Positions 1,121 to 7,408 of a stretch of DNA of 64,000 nucleotides are shown in pieces. The position numbers and the translations under genes are program-made. The notes beneath the pieces were generated by a model. The model ran no database searches, had not been told where the DNA came from, and saw nothing but the letters and a program-made list of their open reading frames with translations. Source of the DNA: Entomortierella parvispora E1425 (lineage: Eukaryota; Fungi; Mortierellomycota); the NCBI GenBank assembly GCA_020891255.1, contig BQFW01000002.1:1364001-1428000 (forward strand). The letters are read 5' to 3'. Position 1 is the stretch's first letter, and the number at the start of each line of letters is the position of its first letter.

Positions 1121-1127
1121 TATAAAA
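1121..1127 (+). promoter_or_regulatory. Putative TATA box of the secreted His-brace gene
   Basis: TATAAAA about 190 bp upstream of ATG 1318, followed by a pyrimidine-rich leader. Confidence 0.5.
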
Positions 1128-1317: not shown

Positions 1318-2034
1318 ATGGTTCTCAAGTCCACCTTCACTTTTATCGCTGTGGCCGCTTTGGCCATCTTCACCGCTGCCCCCCAGCAGGCGGATGCTCA
1401 CTCTTGGGCTGACTGCATTGACTGGAAGTTCAAAAACTCCAAGAACGGCGTTGCTGGCAAGCAGGGCCAGGACTGGAGTGACAATCAGGGCAAGTGCCAG
1501 GGTTACGCTCGTCGTTACCCCTTGAACAAGGCCTTTGGCTCCTTGGACTCTGCCTACCCCAGCCGTCATTACCAGCAGGTCAACAAGAACCCCGACAGCG
1601 CCCTCCCTTGCTCCAACCGCAAGGCCGGTAAGGAGCCCGGTTCGGACGAGACCCGTGCCAACCCCGTCTCCAAGGCCTATGGTGGCAAGTTTGGTCGCAT
1701 GACCGTCACCACCGTCGGTGACACCCTCTGCGTTCGCTGGCCCGCCAAGAACCACGCGGCCAAGAACGAGAAGAACCTCCCTGTTTACATCAACCTGTCC
1801 AAGGTCCGCAACGGCAAGGACATTAGCCAGAAGGAGTTGCTCAAGAACAACATTGCCAAGCTTCCTTACAAGAACTGCCGTCCCGGAAAGAACGAGGACC
1901 GTCGTGCCTGCGGTGGATGCTTCAAGGTCCCCGTCCGTGCCGCCGGTGTCTACTTGCTTCAGTGGCGCTGGATGTTGAACAAGAACGAGTGGTACACTTC
2001 TTGCGCTGATATTCAGATTGGAAAGAAGAAGTAA
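1318..2034 (+). CDS. Secreted 238-aa LPMO-like (histidine-brace) protein, single exon
   Basis: Signal peptide ends A-D-A|H28. Second His in WPAKNH146A. C-terminal LQWRW...EWY226TSCADIQI. Eight Cys. Strong C-ending codon bias. Confidence 0.85.
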   Translation: MVLKSTFTFIAVAALAIFTAAPQQADAHSWADCIDWKFKNSKNGVAGKQGQDWSDNQGKCQGYARRYPLNKAFGSLDSAYPSRHYQQVNKNPDSALPCSNRKAGKEPGSDETRANPVSKAYGGKFGRMTVTTVGDTLCVRWPAKNHAAKNEKNLPVYINLSKVRNGKDISQKELLKNNIAKLPYKNCRPGKNEDRRACGGCFKVPVRAAGVYLLQWRWMLNKNEWYTSCADIQIGKKK

Positions 2035-2644: not shown

Positions 2645-3811
2645 TTAGTGACGGGAAGATGAGGCCGCCCGTAGCAAAAGATCTTTGTAATGTGCTTGGA
2701 CACTGTCCAGGTGCGTTTCCAGATAATCGACCATTTCTATCGAGGTCGGTCAAAAGACAAGAGTTGTGTTAGGCCAACAATACTGGTATCACATAACAGA
2801 GCATGAAAATAAAAAATAAATACCTTGCTTTGACATCTCTTGGTCAACTATCAGCATGCCTTTTGCTGAGGGCTCATTTGGGCCCTGGGATGTAGATCGT
2901 GCAAGTACTTCTTTCCGCTCATGGGCAGTAGCTAAGACCATAACGGGTACCTTCCGCCACCAGTGGCCAAGTCGGAATGGCTTTTGGCTCTCTCCCAAAT
3001 CTTCCTCCTGCCAATGGATCCACCTCCGCACGAGTTTGCTTAGCTTGGCCTTTGACATGTCAGGACTCTTGAACAGCAAAGGGTTCGACCGAATCATTGA
3101 TTGAGCATCCAGCACTGGCACAGAACCTGCCATTTTCCCAAGATTCGCCTGCGTAGAGATATCATCCAAAGTCGATCGCGCCCCGACATGTCCAGCCGAT
3201 CCCGAGAATGAGTTTTGGAGCTCCTCCTGGAAGATTTCTCCGAGTGGTTTCTGAGGTACGCGTCCCCTTGCGTGGCTCTTTTTCGTTGCTTCCTTGGATT
3301 CCTGTACAAGTCGATCAATCTCTTCCTGATCCGAGCCTTTGATGGGCACGCCTACTTTTTGGCAGAGTCCTAGAAATGATTGGACCATCTCCCAGGACTT
3401 TAGTTCGCGCTCCAGAGCTTCGGCCTTTACATTCCCGCTAGACTCCTGGTCAGTTGATATCTTGGTGTTGATCAGGGGCAATGTGTGCTCGACGGCCACA
3501 AGTTCGGCGGACGTTGATTTTGATGAGTCGGTGGCGGAAGGAGCCATCTTCTCCCTGTAGTAAAATAGGAGCTTCGCTGTGTTCGAGTCTGCTTTTGATG
3601 TAGAAGGACGAGCAGGGTTCAAAGACGGGTCCTTGACGGCATGGACGAGCGGCAGCAGGTCCTGTAGAGAGTTGCTGTTCTGGAGCTGCTCCTTTGGGTG
3701 GTGCTGGAACAGATCGGGATGGACCCTGCGAAGGAATAGCTTGAGGTATTGCTGCAGATACACCTGGCGGATCTCTCCGGCCGATTGCTTGAGCAGCTGA
3801 GGTGCACGCAT
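2645..3811 (-). CDS. DUF4460 (TCAIM-like, J-domain-related N-terminus) mitochondrial-type protein; exons about 3811-2823 and 2736-2645
   Basis: N-terminal LKLFLRRVHPDLFQHHPKEQLQNSNSLQDL motif. GT-AG intron gives C-terminus MSKQ|EMVDYLETHLDSVQAHYKDLLLRAASSSRH*. Confidence 0.7.
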
Positions 3812-3847: not shown

Positions 3848-3931
3848 GAATGAATGAATGAATGAATGAATGAATGAATGAATGAATGAATGAATGAATG
3901 AATGAATGAATGAATGAATGAATGAATGAAT
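3848..3931. repeat. (GAAT)21 perfect microsatellite
   Basis: 84 bp of uninterrupted GAAT, about 36 bp upstream of the DUF4460 start codon. Confidence 0.95.
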
Positions 3932-4233
3932 TCAAAGAAAAAAGAAACGGAAATGAGTTTGGTGGCAACTCGCAGCACGTGCGATCGGGATCCTTCCAGT
4001 GCGCTTTTCTTTTTTTTTTTCTTTTTTTTCTTTTTCGGCTTTGCCCATTGCTGCATGCATGCATGTCGCTTTTTTTATTCTTCATTCCTTTCTTTCTTGC
4101 TTCTTGCTACCTGCTATCTGCTACTTCGCACCTCACCTTCCCGTCTACTGGACCTGAAACGCAACACGCGCGGATAGATACCCCCAGACTAGCCCACAAG
4201 GGACCCCCAAACGGAACTCCACCCGCACCCCAA

Positions 4234-4600: not shown

Positions 4601-7408
4601 ATGGCGGGCTCGCGTAAAATCTGGAGCAATGCCGTCAACACGCTGCTGAGCGGAATGGGTAAGAATGACTGACCGCTATCCGAGCGTCATGAAAAGCGCA
4701 GCCTTCCACTCACTAACATTCATCATTGTATTTTCAGAGAGCATCCTGTTGGATGAAGATCTTCAACCTCTTTGGACTCGTGAACATCAACGGGACGACC
4801 CCAAAAAGAAAAGTAAGGCAAAGCTGCGATCGATGTCTAACCATCAGTGATTGACGAACTTGAGAAATTAACCTGTCTGCGCTTTGCCACCATAGGTTTT
4901 TTGCCGACAACGCCAACGCTTCCCAACAGCCACGACCCAACCGTCTCATCACCTCTGAAACGGAAAAACGACCCGCTTCCTGCTTCGGACCGAAATATGA
5001 AATCTCAACGTATAGCGGACCATTTGTCGGCGAAACTCGCAACGACACTTCGAGTTAGTCCCTTGGCCAACAGTACTCGTAGCTCGTCCACAAAACATCA
5101 AACAGGCATGGAAAAGGTGCGAGGTTTCCATCGTGTTCAGCCGCTGCAGGACTCTAAGCACCCCAGTCGACCCGACCACACGGCTCTTGGACCTGTATTT
5201 GGTGGTATTTCGGAGCCAAGAAAGTACAAAAAGGCCGTCGGGAATCGATCCAACCCTACCACCCCAGTCAGTAGTCATCCACCCAGCCCTGGACACCATG
5301 GAGATGACCAAAGCTCCCCAGCGGGATCAAGCTTGGCGTTTGAATCTTTCACCAAAACCAGCGCTTCAGGGATCTTCTTGAACCCTCTCAATCCCTCAAA
5401 ACCCAACAGTCTGTTCATGAGACGAGAGAGCCGATCTAGCCAACGGTTGGCCAAGACACCCTCAAGTCACCATCTGGCCATGGCCACAAGACTGGCCCTC
5501 TTTCACAGGATCCATGCCACTACAAAACTTGCATCAGCGCAGACAAAAGACATGGATACTTGGATCATGGAACAGATGACAAGCCGTGGATTTTCAGATC
5601 GAGGCTCGTTTGAGGTAGAGCTGACAGCGCACGCTCAGATGGTCGCACAGTCATTGACATCCTTGGGAGAGGGACTTTCACAGACAATGCAACAGTCAAA
5701 GACAGCTCATCATTCTATGAGTGCGGAACAGGAATACACAATGTACACCGCCATCCAAACCACAGTGGACACTATGCTCGAAAACTCTCAATGGCTTTGT
5801 GGTCCCGAGTTTGCGATGGGGATCAACCGAATGGTCCCACCATGGTCGATGCACGAGGGTTCGATTGAGCAAATTGTTCATTACGTACAGGTAGTGGAGA
5901 GTATGCGCGAGACCCTCTCTGGTCAATTCCAACACCCTCAGGATTTGGCAGAGGATCTGATGAGATCACAAGAAGTTTTGGATTATCAACGGACGCTGTT
6001 TGGCGAGACACTACGGAACAATGGATTGGCATGGAAAGCGTTGGGACTGCCAGCGATGGAGGGTCTCATTCAGGGAACGCAAGAGTGGGTCCTGAACCTT
6101 GCCAAGACTCTGACCATCAAAATCCGCGCCGAGGTCAATTTGGCACTGGAAAGTATTCATCACTCCAACACCGCTGGCGGAATGGAAGAAGACGAGGAGC
6201 CTCATATGCGACACGCAATGAAGGATGTCATGGAGCTGGTACTTCAAGGCGCCCTCTTGTCCGCGTCCTGTTTGGAGCTTGTGGGCAAGCAATGCCCGAT
6301 GTTGGTAACAGCATGGATGGAGTTGACCAGCCAAAACTGTACATATTCGCTTGGAAAGATGAACGAACTAGTTCTCCGATCAGCTACGAAAAGCGCAGCT
6401 CTAGGCGCAATGGAGATTTTTAGATCGATACATCTCTCAAATTCTCAGCCATCTTCACGGCATCCTTCCACATCGACAGGAAAATCACGGGGTGTATATG
6501 TCAAGACGATGGAGATATTCGAGAGCATGCCTCGTCTTCTACAATGCGTTTCAGAGATGCGGGAGGAAGAAGAATTGGATGGTGGCGCTTTAGAATCTTT
6601 GGGTGATGGCTATGGTGGAGGACCAGACGAGGAGGACATGTTTCCAGGTATCAGTGCAACGTCAAGTGATCAGGACGATAATATGGACCTTGCCTCGTCG
6701 TCCTCTTCAACGTCCTTGGGAACGTCTTATTCTGTCCAGGGTCATCCTCTCACCCACCCGGACCATACGCAGCAACATCGGTCCACCCGTCCTCCCATGC
6801 AGTATGTGCAAAGGCGACTCCCAGTTGATCCACTGCTGGTTCAGAGATGGATCGCCATGGAGTCTCTGGCGTCAGTGCTTGTGGAGACCGGATTGGAACT
6901 TTGCAGCTCCTTGGCAGAAATCCTAGGTGCTGGATACAATCCGTCGTCCTCGACCTTCAATCCAGCTTTGGCACAACCATTTCGACCTGACTCTTCTGGT
7001 ACAGTGGATCACCCTATGGAGCACACTCAGGATGATCGACAGCTCCACCATCAACCTCATCCCTTCGCAGACATGTCTGCCTCTGCTCGTGCTCGCGCTG
7101 CTATTGCCTCCTTGACCAGCATTGCAGGCGGTGGGGCCATGGTCTCGGGTACGGGTGGCGTAGGCCTGATCTATGTCCAGTCTGTGGTCCGACTTTTGAG
7201 CAAGATTATCGAATTCTCTGGGCAGGATTCCCAACAAGAACAACGCCTTTTGGTATGGAAATGACCTTGACATATTTCTGTGAAGTGCAAGATTATAACG
7301 GTGGCTGCCAGCCACATAACGAACATGATATTAACTTTGATAATTATTCCTTTTTTCTAGAGAGTACATTCCAGCCTTCAAAACCTGGAGGCAGTCATGT
7401 CAGTATAG
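4601..7408 (+). CDS. Large hypothetical protein (about 850 aa), helical core with Ser-rich linkers; exons about 4601-4658, 4738-4813, 4848-7252, 7361-7408
   Basis: 805-aa ORF. Upstream and downstream GT-AG introns splice in frame (MAGSRKIWSNAVNTLLSGM...; ...RLL|RVHSSLQNLEAVMSV*). Confidence 0.7.

Follow-up and report, generated by a model that had tools for sequence, protein, structure and literature searches.

The window analysed here is a stretch of 64,000 nucleotides from the fungus Entomortierella parvispora E1425 (contig BQFW01000002.1, positions 1,364,001 to 1,428,000), and the gene in question encodes a small protein with a secretion signal that resembles lytic polysaccharide monooxygenases (LPMOs). 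The coding sequence of this LPMO-like precursor (1318..2034, + strand) was delimited from the list of open reading frames (ORFs) and from the sequence itself. It is a single exon, an uninterrupted ORF of 238 amino acids followed by the stop codon (2032-2034; this and the other codon positions given here were assigned by eye). Residues 1-27 (1318..1398) form a predicted signal peptide with cleavage at A-D-A|H. This leader, MVLKSTFTFIAVAALAIFTAAPQQADA, is followed by H28-S-W and displays Lys4, a hydrophobic core (maximal 9-residue Kyte-Doolittle mean of 3.0), Ala25 at position -3 and Ala27 (1396-1398) at position -1. The mature chain from His28 onwards (1399..2031), to which the AlphaFold, Foldseek and composition analyses assign an LPMO-fold domain, has 211 residues and an isoelectric point (pI) of 9.82. 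The numbers put forward in the initial annotation, eight Cys and 39 Lys/Arg versus 17 Asp/Glu in the mature chain, were recovered exactly upon recomputation, as was the heavy codon bias of the gene (effective number of codons, Nc, 34.9).

Three short regions of the mature protein are of particular importance for what follows. His28 itself (1399..1401, CAC) is, from its conservation in the family, the proposed N-terminal ligand of a histidine brace, to which it would contribute both its amine and its imidazole. The motif W-P-A-K-N-H146-A (1738..1758), in the context GDTLCVRWPAKNH146A, holds the proposed second ligand of the brace, His146 (1753-1755, CAC), again from family conservation. Finally, a C-terminal hairpin, Q215-W-R-W-M-L-N-K-N-E224-W-Y226-T-S-C229-A-D231 (1960..2010), was delimited by its match to structures of the auxiliary activity family AA11 and includes Glu224 (1987-1989) and Tyr226 (1993-1995). 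The protein ends LQWRW-MLNKN-EWY226TSCADIQIGKKK, that is, with a hydrophilic tail.

Representatives of clusters at 50% identity, 1.84 billion in all, were searched exhaustively with HMMER, and 175 of them were detected at E<=1e-3. Conservation was evaluated on 155 representatives aligned to the family hidden Markov model, with the window protein as the 156th row, and counts were made only among rows that carry a residue at the position considered. The three residues originally proposed to build the metal site are nearly invariant: His28 is present in 97/98 rows, His146 in 137/138 and Tyr226 in 136/138, the remaining two rows having Phe. The neighbourhood of the first His is conserved as well (Ser29, 96/98; Cys33, 98/98), and so is that of the second (W141, 128/139; P142, 122/139; N145, 122/138), which gives the family motif W-P-[KR]-N-H-[AV]. 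In the C-terminal hairpin, Trp216 (139/142), Trp218 (138/141) and Cys229 (138/138) are retained. Such a pattern of putative metal-site residues is not due to chance. Cys138 and Cys201 co-vary, both being present in 81 rows and both lost in 50, with a single one of the two in only 1 row; a disulfide is therefore indicated, which would tie the strand bearing His146 to the C-terminal sheet. An alignment of 31 Mortierellaceae sequences shows no variation at H28, H84, H146, E224, W216, W218 or any of the eight Cys, and very little at Y226. His84 is conserved in the fungal clade only, so it lies outside the core site.

The cleavage site was assigned by the (-3,-1) rule together with family-wide conservation, and both agree with the A-D-A|H28 site predicted from the sequence at the outset: wherever it is found, the conserved His directly follows the leader. 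In 83 family members whose leader starts with Met, this leader has a median length of 22 residues and a hydrophobic core and immediately precedes the His. Position -1 is occupied by A, G or S in 81/83 of them and position -3 by V, A, S, T, G, I or L in 83/83, and the predicted leaders of the family obey the classical signal-peptidase rule. Furthermore, the domain stands directly behind the leader in 46 of the 47 relatives of at least 330 residues, all additional modules being C-terminal to it. This extreme N-terminal position would be expected if the free alpha-amine of the His serves as a metal ligand.

The closest homologue of the window protein is EMPS_10130 of the same species, with 84% identity over a full-length alignment. 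More than 100 further Mortierellaceae homologues of the same length share 52-84% identity with it, and all named close homologues belong to this family of fungi. Mortierellaceae genomes have several paralogues, which are often adjacent (BGX28_006494/5/6 on one contig, EDD11_010155/6, EDD11_006256/7). The survey of phylogenetic distribution called for in the initial annotation was carried out and extended the family well beyond these fungi. Basidiobolus meristosporus has a tandem pair (ORX79461/ORX79462; P0335/P0123), and a member was found in all Dictyostelia examined (Heterostelium, Acytostelium, Tieghemostelium, Cavenderia, Dictyostelium purpureum, D. cf. discoideum and D. citrinum). Further members occur in another amoebozoan, Paradermamoeba levis, in the EukProt gene models 'Nk52', which we take to be the ichthyosporean Chromosphaera perkinsii, and among MMETSP and Tara marine protist sequences. 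A profile search of 5.8 billion proteins with the protist members returned mostly metagenome and metatranscriptome proteins and added little taxonomy. Two longer contigs that carry members are clearly eukaryotic, with RabGAP, Rad9, PP2C and C2 genes close by. Scans with motifs of the Mortierellaceae proteins, which are clade-specific and of low sensitivity, turned up no relative among 185k prokaryotic species genomes or in IMG/VR. One protist scaffold from the ENA metagenomes carries a gene for a further copper oxidase, a tyrosinase (L001:2816-3823, + strand), some 4 kb upstream of the homologue P0230; this proximity is probably coincidental.

In a maximum-likelihood tree, the Basidiobolus sequences are nested among those of the Mortierellaceae (support 96/95), and the fungal clade as a whole lies inside a larger environmental clade (100/99). 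Since Basidiobolus belongs to the Zoopagomycota, its position inside the Mortierellaceae clade suggests inter-phylum transfer or differential loss. The tree also resolves a protist clade that contains fusions to WW domains and one fusion to a glycoside hydrolase of family GH5 (100/98), a second protist clade, which contains the second GH5 fusion (98/98), and a clade of amoebozoan and ichthyosporean sequences (96/80). In both GH5 fusions the LPMO-like domain is N-terminal. The GH5 partner in P0241, whose cluster includes P0287 and P0288, resembles EGI of Thermoascus and Xanthomonas cellulases (E of about 1e-77 to 1e-83), and that of P0198 resembles Bacillus Cel5A and a Cytophaga endoglucanase (E of about 1e-71 to 6e-84). 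As the partners differ and stand in two well-supported subclades, they represent two independent fusions to endo-beta-1,4-glucanases. The other fusions are to WW domains (P0175, P0192, P0197) and to TSP1 and EGF modules (P0147). The endoglucanase fusions are the sole clue to the substrate that was found; they point to a neutral beta-1,4-glucan, and cellulose or chitin would be the likeliest substrate class.

The strong positive charge of the window protein had led to the suggestion of an anionic substrate. Close orthologues are indeed basic (pI 8.9-9.8), whereas other Mortierellaceae paralogue clades have pI values of 5.4-6.3; one such acidic clade, from Actinomortierella (P0097, P0104, P0111), has a C-terminal extension ending ...STSLFAQLAE. 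The anionic-substrate idea is unsupported because only one clade has this basic charge, and the GH5 fusions point elsewhere. Charge is thus an adaptation of particular paralogues rather than a trait of the family, and the basic surface may promote binding to walls or soil particles of negative charge.

Two AlphaFold models were computed. The first, based on the Mortierellaceae alignment, had a mean predicted local distance difference test score (pLDDT) of 83; the second, of residues 28-234 and based on a diverse alignment of 61 sequences, reached a pLDDT of 93 and a predicted template modelling score of 0.91. When the better model was compared with the PDB by Foldseek, the top 50 matches were all LPMOs (AA10 and AA9) with a probability of 1.00, the best being the AA10 enzyme SliLPMO10E of Streptomyces lividans (5ftz; E 1.5e-6, template modelling (TM) scores 0.50/0.59). 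The first model gave 49 LPMOs or LPMO-like proteins (AA10, AA9, AA11, AA16, fusolin) among its top 50; the remaining entry, PmoD (6cpd) at rank 44, is itself a copper-binding domain. No entry described as AA13, AA14, AA15, AA17 or X325 appeared in the top 50 of either model, and the BFVD viral structures gave nothing below E 1e-3, only weak matches of the fusolin type. The predicted structure of the window protein is an immunoglobulin/fibronectin-like beta-sandwich of the LPMO fold, in agreement with the fold proposed initially.

In order to relate the family to solved structures by sequence, we searched a profile of 61 diverse family domains against all PDB chains (E<=10). The three best matches were AA11 LPMOs, namely 4mah/4mai (E 3.5e-4), 9exj (5.8e-4) and 7p3u (1.5e-3), and no LPMO outside AA11 was detected, including AA13, AA14, AA15, AA16 and AA17. 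The AA11 match spans only about the last 37 residues (profile positions 160-197 of 197) of a domain of about 200 residues. AA11 reached significance only with this broader 61-sequence profile. With the window protein alone, a match to DsbA was obtained and no AA11, and with a Mortierellaceae-only profile matches to glutaminase-asparaginase ranked above sub-threshold AA11 chains; we regard the DsbA and the glutaminase-asparaginase matches as chance. In the significant alignments, the E-x-Y of the family (E224-W-Y226) aligns with Glu139-Met-Tyr141 of AfAA11B, which bears out, for AA11, the likeness of the C-terminal W-x-W...E-x-Y motif to known LPMOs noted in the initial annotation. In AfAA11B, Tyr141 is the axial Tyr and Glu139 a second-sphere residue whose mutation alters the redox potential and the peroxygenase efficiency, and the combination of Tyr and Glu has been called unique to AA11 (PMC12186267). 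The AA10 enzymes shown in the same study have an axial Phe, and their Glu/Gln originates from a different position (PMC12186267).

The resemblance to AA11, whose compared members AoAA11 (4mah/4mai), AfAA11B (9exj) and AfAA11A (7p3u) are fungal and chitin-active, thus concerns secretion, the N-terminal His and a common C-terminal hairpin, G-x-Y-x-x-x-W-x-W...N..E-x-Y-x-x-C-A. The remainder differs. The H-S-W...C start and the W-P-[KR]-N-H-[AV] motif around the second His have no reported AA11 alignment, a Cys-rich loop region of about 90 residues separates the first His from the core in the window family, AA11 ranks only 42nd among structural neighbours with the first model and falls outside the top 50 with the better one, and the window family is distributed in protists and early-diverging fungi. 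By sequence, the family shares the putative active-site motif of AA11 yet is not a member of it. The best structural neighbours are instead AA10 proteins (5ftz, CBP21 2bem, GbpA), with TM scores of 0.50-0.59 over about 170 columns; they have in common with the window protein a beta-sandwich and an N-terminal His after the signal peptide, and some UniRef records of family members give an AA10-type domain name. Yet the Foldseek identity to AA10 is 8-18%, neither the window protein nor ten homologues with that name have a Pfam LPMO_10 match, and the axial residue is Tyr rather than Phe.

Classification by domain libraries gave a similar picture. The window protein has no match to Pfam AA9 (PF03443) or LPMO_10 (PF03067) at E<=10, and nothing in NCBIfam. 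Among 61 wider members, 4 match LPMO_10 (best E 1.4e-3) and 1 reaches E 1.1e-4 with AA9, a family whose structures came up in Foldseek only as distant neighbours. Of the Pfam families, the domain of unknown function DUF7492 (PF24320) alone recognises the relatives, matching 22/31 Mortierellaceae sequences and 21/61 wider members with E-values from weak to good (best 2.9e-14); P0015, P0075 and P0291 are precomputed as PF24320. Relatives above its gathering threshold of 27 bits include the two Basidiobolus proteins (27.6 and 27.3), P0180 (31.3) and P0197 (33.3), whereas the window protein reaches 13.9 bits, and only residues 214-237 (the last 24) are aligned. The DUF7492 model seems to begin at the conserved His, its position 1 lying 3 residues before the His of P0213. 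The Pfam entry carries no functional annotation. By profile score, the window protein is a peripheral relative of DUF7492. In UniRef, several homologues (e.g. P0002, P0005, P0025, P0046, P0123, P0176, P0181, P0331) bear the name 'Chitin-binding type-4 domain-containing protein'. Ten homologues named in this way had no LPMO_10 match at E<=10 in current Pfam; the label is not reproducible with the current LPMO_10 model and probably stems from an older model or from another predictor.

These data bear on whether the window protein has merely diverged within a known CAZy family, AA11 or else AA10 or AA15, in which case there would be no new family at all. The 'Chitin-binding type-4' names, the significant AA11 profile matches and the first place of AA10 in Foldseek speak for such a view. 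We nevertheless consider it rather improbable: the window protein matches neither LPMO_10 nor AA9 and the ten labelled homologues do not match LPMO_10, the AA11 similarity is confined to the C-terminal segment, no chain of AA13 to AA17 came up in the PDB profile search, and the relatives are gathered in a Pfam entry of their own. AA18 was treated as irrelevant to this comparison, as we take it to be CelOCE, a protein of unrelated fold. AA18 has been named the newest LPMO family, with reference to Santos et al. 2025 (PMC13431639), and CelOCE is a metagenomic cellulose oxidase (PMC13353379). Set apart by the Pfam, PDB-profile and Foldseek comparisons, the window family is probably a new LPMO family. 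The early proposal of an unclassified family therefore holds in that the protein fits none of the named families compared, and has to be corrected in that its relatives are already catalogued as DUF7492, some of them under the chitin-binding label.

A different question is whether the protein oxidises polysaccharides. It could be a histidine-brace copper binder serving copper acquisition or homeostasis, or cell-wall signalling, in the manner of Bim1/X325 or of bacterial binders of the PmoD/CopC/YcnI type. The presence of histidine-brace residues is not sufficient to predict LPMO activity (PMC13353379; PMC12186267), PmoD figures among the weaker Foldseek matches of the first model, and a very basic surface and many paralogues come here without a demonstrated link to polysaccharides. 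X325/Bim1 proteins are likewise secreted fungal histidine-brace proteins, which makes a non-catalytic copper role conceivable for the window protein, as the initial annotation had noted. X325 proteins, however, have an additional Asp ligand and a glycosylphosphatidylinositol (GPI) anchor (PMC13353379). The window protein ends in a hydrophilic GKKK (...IQIGKKK) rather than in a GPI-type hydrophobic C-terminus, no entry described as X325 or Bim1 was present in either Foldseek top 50, the family keeps the axial Tyr and, in most members, the AA11-type Glu, and two independent endoglucanase fusions argue for carbohydrate chemistry. A purely copper-binding role is hence disfavoured and appears unlikely. 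One may go further and suppose a metal-free, non-catalytic secreted protein, acting in the wall, in adhesion or as a basic antimicrobial or effector, that has merely retained an LPMO-like beta-sandwich. The protein is small, Cys-rich, secreted and of pI 9.8, and in Mortierellaceae its family has expanded, with tandem duplications; being small, Cys-rich, basic, secreted and expanded is typical of effectors too. Yet the three metal-site residues and their N-terminal position are conserved almost absolutely across very distant eukaryotes, and basicity is not conserved in the family, which makes this possibility very improbable.

The explanation that we favour, and hold to be reasonably probable, is that the window gene encodes a secreted mono-copper, polysaccharide-oxidising LPMO whose sequence family stands apart from the AA families characterised so far. 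A genuine polysaccharide-oxidising LPMO is preferred because the second sphere is of the catalytic type, the domain is constrained to the N-terminus and cellulases are fused to it. The secretion signal, the conservation of residues, the constraint on position, the LPMO fold and the AA11-type Glu/Tyr motif are computed findings; from them we infer copper binding, brace geometry, catalysis and substrate as follows. The 27-residue signal peptide would be removed after Ala27, so that His28 becomes residue 1 of the mature protein. Disulfides would lock a beta-sandwich bearing the long Cys-stabilised loop region, and His28, through its amine and imidazole, would hold one copper ion jointly with His146 in a histidine brace. 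Tyr226 would be axial, and Glu224, two residues earlier as in AA11, would act in the second sphere and position H2O2 or O2. After reduction to Cu(I), the enzyme would attack cellulose or chitin, structural polysaccharides with beta-1,4 linkages, by oxidative cleavage.

Several observations weigh against this explanation. Glu224 is not universal: about 140 rows of the alignment have E in 89 cases, Q in 17, D in 9 and other residues in about 25. The GH5 fusions sit in protist subclades and not in the fungal clade, so that the fungi may act on another substrate. In the Foldseek comparisons, all solved LPMOs show low similarity (TM 0.3-0.59, identity <=20%). Moreover, histidine-brace proteins devoid of polysaccharide activity do exist, X325/Bim1 being an example (PMC13353379), and the literature searched contained no mention of DUF7492/PF24320 and no description of the family.

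Apart from its coding sequence, the window gene has several features that touch on its expression. A putative TATA box, TATAAAA (1121..1127, + strand), which is a reading of the sequence only, lies about 190 nucleotides upstream of the ATG; a CT-rich tract of about 150 nucleotides (~1150-1310) stands between the two, and an A-rich tract (2062-2090) lies just 3' of the stop codon. This arrangement would be in keeping with strong expression of a fungal gene. The bias in codon usage is strong (Nc 34.9; G+C content at third codon positions, GC3, 0.76; AAG 26 vs AAA 1; AAC 18 vs AAT 1), while the two long ORFs flanking the gene have Nc values of 59.9 and 58.1. Such a bias suggests high expression.

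No paralogue was found elsewhere in the 64 kb of the window; as the gene starts 1.3 kb from the left edge, a tandem copy could lie further upstream. The ORF at 2792-3811 (- strand) encodes a DUF4460-domain protein (Pfam, E 2.9e-12), and the ORF at 4847-7261 (+ strand) a Ser/Pro-rich protein of 805 residues with no Pfam domain; no functional link of these two neighbouring ORFs to the LPMO-like gene was apparent. A perfect (GAAT)21 microsatellite (3848-3931) with adjacent T-rich tracts (4004-4035) was also observed, between the 340-residue minus-strand ORF and the next gene.

A wider interpretation can be offered, and we put it forward tentatively, as a possibility somewhat short of probable when all its parts are taken together. 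The family would be a new CAZy-level family of active LPMOs, ancient in eukaryotes, combining an AA11-like Tyr/Glu site with an AA10-like scaffold and acting on cellulose or chitin. Its signature would be H-S-W ... W-P-K-N-H-A ... W-x-W..N..E-x-Y..C-x-D, and its range would extend over Amoebozoa, Ichthyosporea, early-diverging fungi and marine protists. The family may have been recruited for cell-wall remodelling in the cellulose-building Dictyostelia and expanded for nutrition in the Mortierellaceae, where the strongly basic, probably highly expressed window paralogue may be specialised for charged matrices.

The fold class and the chemistry are already known, and the only entries for the family are a DUF and an automatic 'chitin-binding' label, its members being uncharacterised. 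Our literature search found nothing on the LPMO biology of the lineages to which it is confined, among them Mortierellaceae, Basidiobolus, social amoebae and marine protists. Mortierellaceae are abundant soil saprotrophs and plant-associated fungi, and social amoebae build cellulose stalks. Earlier LPMO families, for example AA14 to AA17, have each widened the view of which polysaccharides are attacked oxidatively and of which organisms are involved. The present family is not conceptually surprising to an LPMO specialist, yet it is directly testable. An AA11-type Tyr/Glu second sphere on a different scaffold would amount to a natural experiment in the second-sphere tuning of copper reactivity, and the GH5 fusions supply a substrate hypothesis that can be put to the test. 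The compact Mortierellaceae gene, intron-less, apparently highly expressed and coding for a mature protein of 211 residues, is a convenient entry to expression and structure work. Should the protein turn out to be non-catalytic, it would be one more member of a growing group, the histidine-brace proteins that handle copper in other ways.

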